Numbered from the stretch's first letter, positions 16,002 through 28,188 are shown. The stretch: 38,192 nt of DNA from Octopus bimaculoides (GCF_001194135.2 NC_069007.1:73160-111351), one strand, 5' to 3'. Translations and numbers: made by a program. Notes: generated from the sequence alone by a model not told the origin.

Positions 16002-16212
16002 CTAATTGGTGCCGCTATGTCAGACATGTTTCTATAGAATTTCGATGGAACCATCCAGTTGAATATCAAATTCCAGTCAAAACGGCCTATTTGTATGGCA
16101 CTTCCTACTGAAGTGACAAAGTGTAGTGTACTGTCATCGATCTGGTCAATCACTGGAGTCACAACATAGCGCTTGTCAGTAGCGATTCGATCAAGAATAG
16201 GCTCCAGCCAGC
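16002..16212 (-). CDS. GALNT: GALNT variable exon copy C: G|WLEPILDRIATDKRYVVTPVIDQIDDSTLHFVTSVGSAIQIGRFDWNLIFNWMVPSKFYRNMSDIAAPI|R
   Basis: Acceptor ttttatatccAG, donor AG|GTTGGT; 211 nt (2+69x3+2), phase 1/2; no stop; joins the exon at 6131-6248 in frame (AG|A = Arg). Confidence 0.88.
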
Positions 16213-17224
16213 CTGGATATAAAATTAGACAATTATTTTAACTGGTTAAATGTCTACATCTTTGTAAATTAGTTTGTTTATCATTAATAAGAGTATAATT
16301 TTTGCCAATTAACCTGATTATCTTAAGAGATGGTATTTAGTTACAAAATTTCATCTTCTAGGTACTCAAGTCAAAATTTGCCTTTGATTGTAGCAGTTGA
16401 TAGAATAAAGTTGATTTAGTTAATTAAGCTCTTCTTCAAATATACGGTTTCATCAGACATCAATATTTTCATTTACAATAAATTTTCAAACAGCTTCGAT
16501 TTCTGATCATCACCATTCTTGGATGAGTACAAAGTACAAGACTGAACTTTCAATCATTTTCTGATTTCTCATCTGACATTTCTCAGAGTGGATCCTATGA
16601 ATAAATTCTAGTTAGTATACCATGAAATAAGATGTCCCCGATTAATAATTTATTTTATCATTTTCAAAATAATAAGTTATCATATATTATATATTATTTA
16701 AATAAATGCTCTCAAACAATTTTCATTTACTATAAAATGGCAGAGTTGTCTGTTTTGCATTCCACGATTTTTGACAAAATCATATAACAGATTCTGTAAG
16801 AAAATAAGTTTGGGAATGTATTTCATCACAACACCATTGACACAGGAATTTGAAGTGAAATTCCCTTTAGTTTAGAAATAAAGGTTTCCTAGATCTAATT
16901 CAGTCTGATACAATGTAGTTTGAACATTTCTAGGAATAAGACAATGACTAGAGATGAAACTGATTGATACATATGTAAATCCTGAAATACTGTTTTATGT
17001 CCATCTCTAAGAGTGAATGAGGTGAATGGTTTGGAAAATTATAATCTTATTTTAAACAATTCAATTATGCATCCAGTTTAATTGTTATTTGCTTGGTATA
17101 AATAAAAAAAATGTTTTTAACAATAACATAAAGAAAGAATGTAATAATAGCTAAACAAAAATAATAAAGAATTGAATAATAATAATAATAATAATAATAA
17201 CAACAACAACAACAACAGCGATTT

Positions 17225-17686
17225 TGTTTGTCTCTGCTACAGGTTACTAAATGCGGCCTTCAGTGCACTAACACCTCCTTGTCTGTCCGGAAGTCAAAGC
17301 CCCAGAGGATCTTTGCCCTCTTGCTTTCGTCCATTACCTTTTCCAGTGTACATTGGTACCAAGCACCCATTACCTCATATCCATACTTCCAGTACAGTAG
17401 TTTTGGACTATCTTGTCGTTTCTGTGCTTCAACGCTTTCTGCACAAGACTTTCACAAGCACTAACAATGCTCCTACCCACACATGTGGCCACGGTTCATT
17501 GTACTTCTGTTTATCCGTTTTCACTGAGCTTGGGTATTCAATGCCAGGCCCTGGGCCATGATGATTAGGTTTTCAGTCTTCTTTTCAAGGTTACCCATGC
17601 TGAGCCACCTCCATGATGCTCCCCCACGGTACACACAATATCTTCAATCTACAACATCACAATATTGGATACTGTGCAACGCTTTC
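17225..17686 (-). mobile_element. R4/Dong-like (RLE-type) non-LTR retrotransposon fragment
   Basis: SWRWLSMGNLEKKTENLIIMAQGLAL...KHRNDKIVQKLLYWK...KILWGFDFRTD...RPH; stops and frameshifts; flanked on both sides by (AAT)n/(AAC)n. Confidence 0.75.
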
Positions 17687-17730
<44 letters not shown>

Positions 17731-17754
17731 TAATAATAATAATAATGATGATGA

Positions 17755-18960
17755 TGTTTTCTACTATAGGCACAAGGCCTAAAATTTTTAGGGAAAGAGT
17801 TAGTTAATTACATCAATCCCAATATTTGATTAGTACTAATTTTATCAATTTCCTGAAATATTTCAGAAGAGGGCAAGTCAATTACAACAACCCCAGAGTT
17901 CAACTGGTACTTAATTTATCGACTCTGAAAGGATGAAAGGCAAAGTTGAAAAGAAGTAGGATTTTATGCAGAATCAACTTACAACAGATGCTTTTATAGA
18001 ATCAAATGCTTGATAAAGCAACTTATCCAAAAATAAGCTGACATCACCAACCCAATGCATGCAATATATTCTCTCTACAATCATCGCTCAATTCTATAAC
18101 AGAACTGTGAGCTCTGTCATCAAATACTACATTACAGATTCGATATCAAATAGCCATCCCACGCTCAACATTTGACATTATAAAACATTGCTCAATCCAT
18201 ACAACTCACTCCCTGCACATTCACAATAACACACGCGAAGCCAGCCAACAAAATGTGACATGTGGCTCATAATCTCCACAGAAAATAGAAAGAACATTAA
18301 AATAAGATGAGAAATAACAAATGTCACAAACAAAAGTAGAACATTATCGACAGCTGTGAATTTCCATAAAAAAAAAAAGACTGTCAAGACACAGCTCAGG
18401 AAATCAGAGGAGCACTGGATGGTGGTACTGTAGACACATGGAGGAAATTGTTGAAATAATAACAATAATAATGGTTTCAAATTTTGACACAGGGGCAGCA
18501 GTTTTGCGATGAGTTGATTACATCAACCCCAGTGTTCAACTGGTACTTATTTTATCTTTTCTACTCTAAGCACAAGGCCCAAAATTTTGGGGGAGGGAGC
18601 CAGTCAATTAGATCGACCCCAGTATGCAACTGGTACTTATTTTATCAATTTCTAAAGGATGATGGGGACAAGTTGACCAGATAAAAATTTGGAAGACCAC
18701 TAAACATTTTGGCCAGTGTCCTAATGATGGCAGCTCATTGTCTTTGAAATAATAATTCTTTCTACTATAGGCAAAAGGCCTGAAAAGGGGAGGCGAGGGG
18801 CCTAGTCGATTACATTGAGCCCAGTGCATAACTGGTACTTAATTTATCGACTCCAAAAGGATGAAAAGCAAAGTCGGCCTTGGTGGAGTTTGAACTCAGA
18901 ACATAATGAAGAGAAAATATTTTACCCAGCATGCTAACGACTCAGCCAGCTCACTGCCCA
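17755..18960 (-). mobile_element. Cluster of 4-5 partial or full SINE copies (same family as 6941-7134)
   Basis: Repeated CTACTATAGGCACAAGGCCT..., CCCCAGT...CAACTGGTACTT...AAGGATGAAAGGCAAAG; head GCCAGCTCACTGCC at ~18945-18958. Confidence 0.8.
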
Positions 18961-19441
18961 ATTGATGCTGACAATAGGATGCACCATTCAAAGGCAAATG
19001 TTAGTGGAACTTAGGCATCAAAAGTGGAGGAAGGTAGATATATCTCAAACTAACGTACCAAACCACCACTAGGGGTCTACACATCTTTCTCTCAATATCA
19101 GGAGTTTAGCCGTCTAGAAATTATGAAACGTTAGGAAAACAGGAAGAAACTCGATTGAACAATAAAACACTTGAGAACATTTTCTCAAGACCTTTTTTTA
19201 ATACAAAAAGACAAAGCAACACAACCGTTTGCCAGAAGATTAAAGCAAAAGGCAAAACATGGCCACCGACCAAAGTAGAAAAACTGGAAAGAAAAAGTTA
19301 TGTACGGTAAATATCTAGCTCAACAACGGATAAATCAATGGCTCAAAGGTATTGGGGACACACTTACACACAACCCTTCCACCCAACGAATTAATTTTAT
19401 GCATACATCAAGAAAACGGGGGGAAAAACGGGTTTAATTAT

Positions 19442-19533
19442 GAATAGCCTCCCATTTTTCCAATGAGAATAGCCTCCCTTTTTCCAATGAGAGTAGTCTC
19501 CCCCTTTTTTTTTTCAATGAGAGTAACCTCCCT
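19442..19533. repeat. ~25-bp minisatellite, ~4 units (GAATAGCCTCCC(T)nCCAATGA)
   Basis: Directly visible tandem units with a variable T run. Confidence 0.85.
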
Positions 19534-19904
19534 TGTTTGCTAAGGGAAGTTACTCTTGAATTACTCTCGAAAACAGAATTTACAGATTTTTGCAATAAAT
19601 GAATAATAATTAAACCAATTACAACAACAACTCTCCGAGGCAGTTTGATCGGCTAGAAACTACAGCCAAATCCCCTGAACAACACACATGTAATGAAGGA
19701 AGAACACGATAGACAGTTGTCTCGTCGTCGCAGGAACAGAGCTGACTTAAACAACAACAAGAACTACACAATCCGTTAGAAATCGATGGAATCTAAATAT
19801 AAAAGGGTTCACTGTGTATCTGTATGTGTGTGTATGTATATGTGTGTGGGTGTGTGCTAGTAAAAATAGGTGTAAAAGTATTTGTGTACATATGTATGTT
19901 CTGT

Positions 19905-19935
<31 letters not shown>

Positions 19936-26393: not shown

Positions 26394-27336
26394 CACACAC
26401 ACACACACACACATTTACAAATCAGTCACAGAAACACTATGCAATAACATGGAAAAAGTACTTTACTACTTATTGTACAATCGACAATAGCAACAAAAGA
26501 GCGAATGATAACAGTTTTCATGAGTAGAGCAGACGTACTAATAACAACATATTTGAATAAAGGGAAATATTTCTACAAACTTTTATCTGAATCTTAATTC
26601 TTCCTATTTAGTCTTGATTCCCTGAAATATATCCTTGCATCATAATTATAAACCACAGAGATATCTTAATGTGTTCTCAGGTCTTTGGATGAAATTTGGG
26701 ATAGCTCATATAAAACAAAGCAACAACAACAACATCAACAATCATAATAATAGCAATAATTACTTCTTATAAAGGGTAAAATGTCTGAAATTTAACGATA
26801 CAATCGTTACTTGATTGATATTGTATTTTATCCACTCTGGAGAAACAAAAGACAAGCTCAAGCTTGGAGGGATGTCAACTCAGAATGTAAGAAGTGGAAC
26901 AAATACCACAAGGCATTTCTCTCAACATTAACATTTCTGCTGACCACCACCATTAATAATTGTTTCTAAGACAAGCACGACTGAAATTATTTATGGGTGG
27001 GGTAGGGTATTGTTAGTTGATTACATCAACTCCAGGACACACAGACACACACAATTACCTATATATATATATATGTACATATGCATGTGTGTATGTATAG
27101 ATATATATAAATGCATGTATGTTTGTATAGCTGAATAGACTAGGTAATTGTAGTAACCGACAATAAGAGAAACAGAATGAGCGTAAGGACGCTTAGCATT
27201 TATTGGTGCCTTACAACATGGCCAGGGGACTTCTGTCTTTGGGAAGAGTCATAATATTTGGCCATTTTATAAGATCTCAATAAACACCAAGTTTGTGTGT
27301 GTGTGTGTCCCCAAACACAGATATAAATATGTATGC

Positions 27337-27370
<34 letters not shown>

Positions 27371-27499
27371 GTTTAAATATGTACATGTACAAGGTTTTGA
27401 TATTTAAAATAACAGCAGAGAATATGTAAATAATTATAATCTGAATATGGAATGCCTCTTTCCTTTTTTATTTTATATTTATTTAGTAAAGCTCTACTT

Positions 27500-27532
27500 G
27501 CTGCTGTCTTCTTTTTTTTTTGTATTTATGCA

Positions 27533-27626
<94 letters not shown>

Positions 27627-27744
27627 CGCACACACATTTGTGTATGTGTGTTGTCTTTAACACTTTAAAAAAAGAAGACAGGTGTTTGTGTGTGTACGTG
27701 CATGCATGGTGTACATGTGTACACATATGATGTACGTATGTGTA

Positions 27745-27779
<35 letters not shown>

Positions 27780-27950
27780 GCATATATTTATATATACACA
27801 CACACACACACACATATTTATACATACACACACACACATATTTATACATACACACTCTAACACACATTATAGACATATAATGTGAGGTACTATATATATA
27901 TTAGTGTGTGTATATAGACACAAATACGCGTACATATATACACATACAGG
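27500..27950. repeat. (TA)n/(TG)n/(CA)n microsatellite block
   Basis: Directly visible. Confidence 0.95.
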
Positions 27951-28011
27951 GAAAGAATCGTCTTTTTTTCTTTCTCTCTACATATTGTCTTCTACTGGTT
28001 CCAAAATATAC

Positions 28012-28188
28012 CTGATTGGTGCGACATCACTGTTCCGTCTCTGTCGTTCCACATCTGGTATTCCATGCCATGTGAATTGTAAACTCCAATCAAATCCTCC
28101 TATACTTGTGCTCTTAGCACTACCGTATTGGTAGCGGAATGACTCATCCTCGACCACATCTATCACAGGAGTCACAACATTTGACTTG
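28012..28188 (-). CDS. GALNT: GALNT variable exon copy A (canonical type; 5' end lost in gap): ...KSNVVTPVIDVVEDESFRYQYGSAKSTSIGGFDWSLQFTWHGIPDVERQRRNSDVAPI|R
   Basis: Donor AG|GTATAT, phase 2; family-consensus GGFDWxLQFxWH; the sequence runs into the N gap at 28189, so the acceptor is not visible. Confidence 0.9.

Follow-up and report, generated by a model that had tools for sequence, protein, structure and literature searches.

Three tandem versions of a catalytic-domain exon in a polypeptide GalNAc-transferase gene of Octopus bimaculoides: a putative acceptor-groove switch

Polypeptide GalNAc-transferases are the initiating enzymes of mucin-type O-glycosylation, and the residues which set the acceptor preference of each isoenzyme are an open problem in this field. 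Exon switches at several places within the enzyme family are already known. The locus of Octopus bimaculoides treated here raises the question whether a gene may also exchange part of its acceptor groove and thereby form isoenzymes for different peptides. We consider it likely, with a probability of about 0.65, that the gene carries three tandem versions of one exon which are used mutually exclusively and probably confer different peptide preferences.

The gene and its exons

On its minus strand the window, i.e. the whole stretch of 38,192 nt that was analysed, carries a mollusc-type polypeptide GalNAc-transferase gene, closest to Drosophila PGANT9, of which the 3′ two-thirds are included. The following features were located.

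28189-28980, assembly gap: removes the start and the acceptor of exon A
28012-28188, minus strand: cassette exon A, canonical version, 177 nt visible; PVIDV, GGFDW, FTW, DVERQRR; donor gtatat
24135-24144, 10-N gap: within the A-B intron; no exon or reading frame hit
21677-21884, minus strand: cassette exon B, 208 nt (3n+1); PMIGI, GHFDW, FRWK, FYKNLSDI; acceptor ctacag, donor gttagt
20437-21276, 840-N gap: within the B-C intron; no exon or reading frame hit
16002-16212, minus strand: cassette exon C, 211 nt (3n+1); PVIDQ, GRFDW, FNWM, FYRNMSDI; acceptor atccag, donor gttggt
6131-6248, minus strand: constitutive exon d1; SPTMAGGLF..., Gal/GalNAc-T motif with WGGEN
5319-5504, minus strand: constitutive exon d2; third Mn ligand His (T2 H359), F361 equivalent and flexible loop
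4303-4431, minus strand: constitutive exon d3; end of the catalytic domain and linker
3184-3288, minus strand: constitutive exon d4; lectin alpha repeat, one copy
2851-2979, minus strand: constitutive exon d5; lectin beta repeat
2144-2299, minus strand: last coding exon d6; lectin gamma repeat, stop TGA at 2144-2146

The best solved relatives are the Drosophila PGANT9 structures (6E4R/6E4Q; E 1e-133), and the match to the PGANT9, T1 and T2 chains extends through the region of exon d2 with the third metal-ligand His and the flexible loop. The hallmarks of family GT27 are present in the six single-copy exons that follow the cassettes (d1-d6): the Gal/GalNAc-T motif ending in WGGEN in d1, the third metal-ligand His followed by the flexible loop in d2, and a C-terminal ricin-B lectin domain whose three QxW repeats read GNQYW, GNQEW and DRQIW in d4-d6. 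Furthermore, the Pfam domains Glyco_transf_7C (E 1e-8) and Ricin_B_lectin (E 1e-27) were recognized. The statement of a preliminary description of this DNA that the Mn His, WGGEN and the flexible loop are constitutive is thus borne out, as they lie in the single-copy exons d1 and d2. Neither a motif scan nor tblastn with full-length orthologues revealed a DxH exon within the window; the upstream exons lie beyond position 38192 or in gaps. Since the N-terminal half of the GT-A domain falls outside the window, AlphaFold2 models of the partial isoforms B and C (50 homologues each) reached a pLDDT of only 30-59 in the catalytic half, where the cassette was not informatively modelled, and of about 85-96 in the lectin domain.

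Three copies of one exon

Searching the window by tblastn with mollusc orthologues yielded exactly three copies of the cassette (E 1e-10 to 1e-26) and no further one, and no other exon of the gene was found duplicated. A, B and C, adjacent as scaffolded, lie all on the minus strand upstream of d1 and contain the sequences which had been quoted for them in the preliminary description. Copies B and C are both intact; each is bounded by AG/GT splice sites, and they agree in phase and in having a length of 3n+1. Exon A agrees with them in its donor and 3′ phase; its 5′ end lies in the gap 28189-28980, by which about 37 nt and the acceptor are lost, judged against the complete exon A of a relative (214 nt, acceptor ttttag, donor gtatat). 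The two other gaps flagged earlier spare the exons, both being intronic, and the larger one in the B-C intron could hold a further cassette.

The first base of d1 finishes an Arg or Lys codon begun by every cassette. Because of the 3n+1 lengths and the shared phase, skipping of the cassette or inclusion of two of them shifts the frame, and early stop codons arise in silico in either case. Such an arrangement suggests that the versions would be used mutually exclusively in O. bimaculoides. A search for docking/selector RNA pairings and shared intron motifs gave an output dominated by TA/CA microsatellites and SINE-like repeats, and the one 12-mer common to the introns was not clearly beyond chance.

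Exon A and the complete exon of the relative are 84 % identical in nucleotides and 95 % in amino acids, with a dN/dS of 0.01-0.03. Among A, B and C the synonymous sites are saturated, so that only identities by codon position are usable; between B and C these amount to 67 % at position 2 and 35 % at position 3.

The acceptor groove and the cassette classes

The cassette corresponds to residues 233 to about 301 of human GalNAc-T2, i.e. about 70 residues; the numbering was checked against residues 232-341 of PDB 4d0t_A. At the positions of interest the three copies read as follows.

T2 D254: A, D; B, G; C, D
T2 V255: A, V; B, I; C, Q
T2 G273: A, G; B, H; C, R
T2 F280: F in A, B and C
T2 W282: W in A, B and C
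T2 Y284: A, G; B, Q; C, V

The residue readings proposed earlier from manual alignment agree with this comparison: the F-x-W pair occurs in every copy as FTW (A), FRW (B) and FNW (C), the second Gly of GGFDW is His in B and Arg in C, the V255 equivalent is V, I and Q, respectively, the conserved Asp of P.ID is Gly in the PMIG of B, and DVERQRR of A is replaced by FYKNLSDI in B and FYRNMSDI in C. Among 50 orthogroup sequences, 94 % retain D254 and 96 % retain G273.

That the swapped exon encodes the peptide groove applies to one side of it. Residues of the groove and the Pro pocket in the T2 complex include V255, L270, F280, W282 and Y284 (PMC4432651), all of them within the cassette, whereas the groove residues F361, H365 and F377 are constitutive and lie outside. 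Of the groove residues listed beforehand, V255, L270, F280 and W282 are found in that source and A266 is outside the verified list; the equivalents of A266 and L270 sit in an indel-rich loop, so their assignment is uncertain. Nor is the cassette purely an acceptor-side module, because it also contains I253, which acts as gatekeeper for the UDP-GalNAc N-acetyl pocket (PMC7276986) and is Ile in all three copies. No literature source assigning D254 or G273 to the groove was found, and by beta-strand alternation D254 would be expected to point away from I253 and V255.

Comparison with other molluscs separates the two alternative copies. We define here a class of cassettes, called type M, which have a GTTRGT donor and, in T2 numbering, Met283, K/R/N at 273 and a polar residue at 255. 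Cassette C belongs to it with Q255, R273, M283 and the donor gttggt; cassette B (I255, H273, K283) does not, having only its donor gttagt in common. Of 20 cassettes with Met283, 18 combine it with K/R/N at 273 and with Pro or a polar residue at 255. Counterparts were found in Littorina, a gapless ENA contig (L008), Solemya and oysters. The gapless loci of Littorina (L003) and L008, and also Solemya (L002), show a succession of DxH exon, A cassette, type-M cassette and d1, and the cassettes there have intact splice sites, a length of 214 nt and a GTTRGT donor like B and C. In an oyster-like contig of 1327 nt encoding a product of 351 aa, one type-M cassette is directly joined to the downstream exons; being intron-less, this contig is transcript-like. 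In addition, several cassettes are strung in tandem in oyster and insect gene models. Conservation in other species was thus found for C and not for B, and C is, judged by these sequences, a member of an old alternative cassette class of gastropods and bivalves. The substitutions described as unusual in both copies are therefore, in C, the conserved signature of this class; B is an orphan and the most divergent of the copies.

According to the mechanism we propose, one version would be spliced between the upstream DxH exon, outside the window, and d1. The cassette encodes the helix after DxH, the strand with I253 of the donor N-acetyl pocket and V255, a variable hairpin followed by GGFDW, the groove strand F280-x-W282-x-Y284 and the charged helix ahead of the Gal/GalNAc-T motif. 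A is the canonical, very strongly constrained version and C an old alternative type with polar 255, basic 273 and Met283. By the exchange one acceptor-groove wall and the underlying sheet would be remodelled, and all isoforms would share the metal site, WGGEN, the flexible loop and the lectin domain. Most likely, isoenzymes with different peptide preferences would in this way arise from one gene.

In an alternative reading, which we regard as rather unlikely, only A and C are used, and B, which arose from the C type by duplication within its lineage, has lost its function and is an unused or decaying pseudo-exon. Neither 5.8 billion clustered proteins nor 1.84 billion representatives yielded a B orthologue or B-like cassette, the best matches being generic with at most 58 % identity; His at T2-273 occurs in B alone among 216 cassette segments; the Met283 and polar-255 signature is absent; and of 33 conserved positions B deviates from the consensus at 10, D254G and G273H among them, compared with 5 of 31 in C. 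Against this reading stand a frame that stays open over 69 codons in AT-rich DNA, for which we estimate a chance of about 0.6 % in random sequence of such composition, a length of 3n+1 with correct phase, the AG and GT sites, and a polypyrimidine tract which is the strongest among the copies. Moreover, the donor of B, GTTAGT, recurs unchanged in type-M cassettes of other molluscs, Gly254 recurs in oyster cassettes, where it is retained across several related sequences, and the family-invariant residues P251, I253, G272, F274, F280 and W282 are all retained. Probably B derives from a duplication of the C type within its lineage. A further doubt concerns catalysis: the B and/or C isoforms might be made but dead, serving as decoys or regulators and not as enzymes of new specificity. 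The positions substituted in B/C, D254 and G273, are kept in 94-96 % of the orthogroup and adjoin I253 of the donor pocket. We nevertheless hold loss of activity to be very improbable, as gastropods and bivalves have preserved the type-M signature along with all invariant residues, the A, B and C isoforms have the metal ligands, WGGEN and the flexible loop in common, and in pgant9 as well as in pgant5 both splice forms are active enzymes.

The layout itself could be an assembly artefact in which contigs with paralogue exons or haplotigs were scaffolded together. The copies A, B and C and the downstream exons each come from a different contig, with N runs in between, and the contig carrying B is only 2.9 kb long; their tandem order and orientation are therefore those given by the scaffolding. 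The copies are, however, only 50-58 % identical in nucleotides and 38-48 % in amino acids, and hence are old duplicates, neither alleles nor haplotigs. They share one strand and follow each other as in a coherent gene, no duplicate of any other exon was found, the gapless loci of Littorina and L008 show the same layout of A, type M and d1, and tandem cassettes recur in the oyster and insect models. Mis-scaffolding of this kind was consequently judged to be very unlikely, and we retain the reading of three tandem, mutually exclusive exons.

Relation to known isoenzyme switches

A broader reading, to which we would give slightly less than even odds, is that a protostome pgant9-type gene possesses an old exon cluster swapping the beta-sheet of the acceptor groove, that type M has a distinct specificity and that B is a young, fast-evolving third one. 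If true, this would be the third natural specificity switch in the GalNAc-T family; no description of a mutually exclusive acceptor-groove exon cluster in pgant9-type genes was found in the literature. The gene would then represent a natural swap experiment in which about 70 residues (V255, hairpin, GGFDW, F-x-W and the next helix) are exchanged and stem, metal site, flexible loop and lectin domain are constant. The basic residue of type M at the near-invariant second Gly of GGFDW, together with polar 255 and Met283, would result in a distinct acceptor specificity; the signature suggests point mutations for PGANT9, T1 or T2 and would supply ready mutational hypotheses for the human enzymes. 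As annotation pipelines mis-join the cassettes, the number of invertebrate isoenzymes is under-counted.

Experimentally supported clusters of two or three mutually exclusive homologous exons are known from C. elegans gly-5 (9a/9b/9c) and gly-6 (8a/8b) and from human GALNT13 (PMC4165533, PMC9741552). The gly-5 and gly-6 exons measure 102-111 nt, the octopus groove exon about 210 nt; since the worm lengths are 3n, their exclusivity cannot rest on the reading frame. We infer that they match the lectin alpha exon in size and not the groove exon. The segment swapped in the octopus also varies in the orthologue of the crab Scylla paramamosain, annotated as 'putative polypeptide N-acetylgalactosaminyltransferase 9', whose RefSeq variants X1, X2, X3, X6 and X7 differ only in the groove segment and the lectin alpha exon. 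By annotation only, this one gene contains the region of T2 about 240-279, including V255 and GGFDW, in four versions, one of them with Asn255 like type M. Multi-cassette gene models are also annotated in a psyllid and other arthropods, and the literature search returned no paper describing these groove-segment alternatives of the crab and other arthropods. The arthropod cassette stops before F280, and F-x-W and the next helix are constitutive there, unlike in the octopus.

The closest solved relative, Drosophila pgant9 (6E4Q, 6E4R), likewise forms isoenzymes via one swapped homologous exon, and in the fly the swap of exons 8A and 8B changes the preference between charged substrates (PMC6115407). 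The fly switch is a lectin alpha repeat of about 30 aa (PMC6115407), whereas the octopus swap affects the catalytic domain between the DxH and the Gal/GalNAc-T motif. Only one alpha exon, at 3184-3288, was found in the window by tblastn, with no duplication of the pgant9 type, and an identity of the octopus locus with the 8A/8B switch was therefore rejected. An aphid locus has two lectin alpha exons. In pgant5 an exon swap changes the substrate preference and one residue within the exon alters specificity (PMC12776162, preprint). Its forms A and B (residues 398-457; PMC12776162) result, as proposed for the octopus gene, from a mutually exclusive exon within the catalytic domain; the pgant5 cassette, however, comprises the flexible loop and a helix-turn-helix and thus corresponds to d2, which is constitutive in the octopus.

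Exon anatomy of the cassette cluster

The window is AT-rich (G+C about 33 %), with abundant TA/CA microsatellites and seven N runs. Motif scans and translation place a GalNAc-transferase gene on its minus strand, the product of which possesses the Pfam domains Glyco_transf_7C and Ricin_B_lectin. The top database matches are mollusc proteins (70–75 % identity), with arthropod "GalNAc-T 9" proteins ranking next; the nearest solved structures are Drosophila PGANT9 (6E4R and 6E4Q; E 1e-133) and then T1. The three homologous copies of a swapped exon (cassettes A, B and C) claimed in the preliminary description are present: exon boundaries were set by reading the DNA directly, and tblastn with full-length mollusc orthologues against the window returned the cassette exactly three times and each downstream exon (d1–d6) once. 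The same search detected no upstream exons, including the DxH exon, in 28981–38192. The parts of the enzyme described earlier as constant are indeed so.

Features of the GalNAc-transferase gene (motifs from motif scan)
28012–28188, minus: exon A, 177 nt visible, acceptor in gap, donor gtatat
28086–28100, minus: GGFDW of copy A
21677–21884, minus: exon B, 208 nt, acceptor ctacag, donor gttagt
21748–21762, minus: GHFDW of copy B
16002–16212, minus: exon C, 211 nt, acceptor atccag, donor gttggt
16073–16087, minus: GRFDW of copy C
6131–6248, minus: exon d1, single-copy
6149–6163, minus: WGGEN, single occurrence
5319–5504, minus: exon d2, single-copy
4303–4431, minus: exon d3, single-copy
3184–3288, minus: exon d4, single-copy
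2851–2979, minus: exon d5, single-copy
2144–2299, minus: exon d6, single-copy, stop codon 2144–2146

B and C start in phase 1, and the last two bases of each copy together with the first A of d1 encode Arg (A, C) or Lys (B). In silico, inclusion of both B and C leads to a stop seven codons into the second exon and skipping of the cassette to a stop after 34 codons; by reading frame, the copies are predicted to be mutually exclusive. Since the identity among A, B and C is just 50–58 % at the nucleotide and 38–48 % at the amino acid level, they are old duplicates and not alleles. B and C share 67 % of second but 35 % of third codon positions, a pattern indicative of coding constraint; dS between the copies is saturated.

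Exon A is cut short by the gap 28189–28980. The complete exon A of a relative (P0131, a single-exon ORF from Logan contigs L004–L007) is 214 nt long, between a ttttag acceptor and a gtatat donor, so about 37 nt of the window exon remain unread; over the common 177 nt, identity is 84 % at the nucleotide and 95 % at the amino acid level, with a dN/dS of 0.01–0.03. The scan-flagged gaps 20437–21276 and 24135–24144 are intronic and break no exon according to the gap test, and a further cassette could lie inside the former (840 nt). A, B, C and d1–d6 are each located on a separate contig and therefore their order depends on scaffolding.

The introns of the cluster are rich in repeats. Several copies of a SINE-like interspersed repeat of about 100–200 nt (core GGCCTGAAATTTTGGGGGAGGGG..CAGTCGATTAGATCGACCCCAGT..AACTGGTACTTAATTTATCGAC), which may be akin to an octopus SINE, are spread across the cassette introns (6935–7072, 17754–17981, 18510–18909, 20153–20392 and 22573–22804). 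The intron between C and d1 contains a degraded LTR-retrotransposon remnant (13348–14196, minus), seen as broken ORFs matching Integrase_H2C2 and rve integrase core domains, as well as a minisatellite rich in GAG/GAA, with about ten units of 36 nt (12055–12174). An inverted repeat in the A–B intron (26005–26393; 184-nt arms, 81 % complementary, 21 nt apart) may represent either a MITE-like element or a long hairpin within the intron. The 12-mer TTATTCTATCAA is found at 16397–16408 and 22101–22112 (minus), 185 nt upstream of the acceptor of C and 217 nt upstream of that of B; with one mismatch allowed, four matches were counted where 0.96 are expected, and 3 of 100 shuffles gave at least as many, which is not clearly above chance.

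Residues of the peptide groove

The T2 segment 232–341 was checked against PDB 4d0t_A and then aligned to the cassettes.

Cassette residues at human GalNAc-T2 (T2) positions, from the alignment
D254: A, D; B, G; C, D
V255: A, V; B, I; C, Q
G273: A, G; B, H; C, R
F280: A, F; B, F; C, F
W282: A, W; B, W; C, W
Y284: A, G; B, Q; C, V

The hydrophobic peptide pocket of T2 is formed by V255, L270, F280, W282 and Y284 together with F361, H365 and F377 (PMC4432651). The earlier view that the cassette encodes the groove thus holds for one side of it, the first five of these residues; A266, also invoked there, is absent from this list. The cassette includes I253 as well, which acts as gatekeeper to the N-acetyl pocket for GalNAc (PMC7276986) and is Ile in A, B and C alike. 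The interpretation put forward before is partly supported: the cassette encodes part of the acceptor groove plus one donor-pocket residue, and its exchange might plausibly change substrate selectivity. D254 and G273 are conserved in 94 % and 96 % of 50 orthogroup sequences, respectively. Of the conserved cassette positions, 10 of 33 deviate from the consensus in B, as do 5 of 31 in C. The coupling of D254 and G273 with residue 283 may reflect sheet repacking. AlphaFold models of isoforms B and C were uninformative about the cassette.

A conserved mollusc class and the singular cassette B

The substitutions in C had been regarded as unusual. Instead, C (Q255, R273, M283) matches the signature of a conserved alternative cassette class of molluscs, here called type-M: among 216 cassette segments, 18 of the 20 with Met283 also carry a polar residue or Pro at 255 and K, R or N at 273. 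In Littorina saxatilis (locus L003, free of N) the DxH exon is followed by a canonical A-type cassette (14302–14517), a second cassette reading PVIDT, GKFDW and FNWM (19798–20013) and then d1; the same arrangement recurs on a 313-kb ENA contig without gaps (L008), the second cassette of which reads PVIDS, GNFDW and FNWM. Solemya velum (L002) has one A-type exon (55733–55950) and, 5.3 kb apart, two type-M copies of identical sequence (70879–71091 and 76171–76383). Its A-type exon seems to be frameshifted near 55861, and the annotated protein carries the type-M cassette. The oyster model K1Q (P0001) contains three non-canonical cassettes in series, one with PVIG and GKFDW, and many single-exon ORFs from other assemblies encode cassettes of these types. 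In an oyster-like 351-aa product from a 1327-nt Logan contig, one such cassette is joined directly to d1–d6; as this length leaves no room for introns, the product is transcript-like.

Type-M exons in Littorina, L008 and Solemya comprise 214 nt with AG acceptors and share an unusual GTT(A/G)GT donor with C and B (16000–16001 and 21675–21676 in the window); A-type exons have GTA-type donors. The alternative cassettes have, in this motif, a weak 5′ splice site of their own that is conserved.

Neither a word-indexed nor an exhaustive representative search revealed a B-like cassette, the best matches being generic, and among the 216 segments no other has His at T2 position 273. In a neighbour-joining tree the A types group together (71 %), and B joins C with weak support (51 % bootstrap) next to the type-M cassettes. 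B probably arose from the C type by a lineage-specific duplication; it is intact and looks spliceable, and so far is a candidate alternative exon.

Arthropod clusters and known exon switches

In the Scylla paramamosain orthologue, RefSeq isoforms X1, X2, X3, X6 and X7 differ in just two blocks, the catalytic cassette segment (four versions) and the lectin alpha exon. Gene models of psyllids and other arthropods contain between two and four cassettes in tandem. In the aphid, the cassette of locus L010 stops short of F280, and there are two lectin alpha exons. Several public models join mutually exclusive cassettes in series (oyster P0001, aphid P0077, psyllid P0023 and P0045), an annotation error to which the exon clusters give rise. 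P0077 also joins both lectin alpha exons (L010, 20320–20992), and P0001 repeats the d3 segment.

In the literature on mutually exclusive GalNAc-T exons we found no description of the groove cassette. Such exons were described for gly-5, gly-6 and GALNT13 (PMC4165533, PMC9741552), in the lectin alpha repeat of pgant9 (PMC6115407) and in the flexible loop of pgant5 (PMC12776162). In contrast to the latter two, the predicted swap in the octopus gene concerns the groove cassette.
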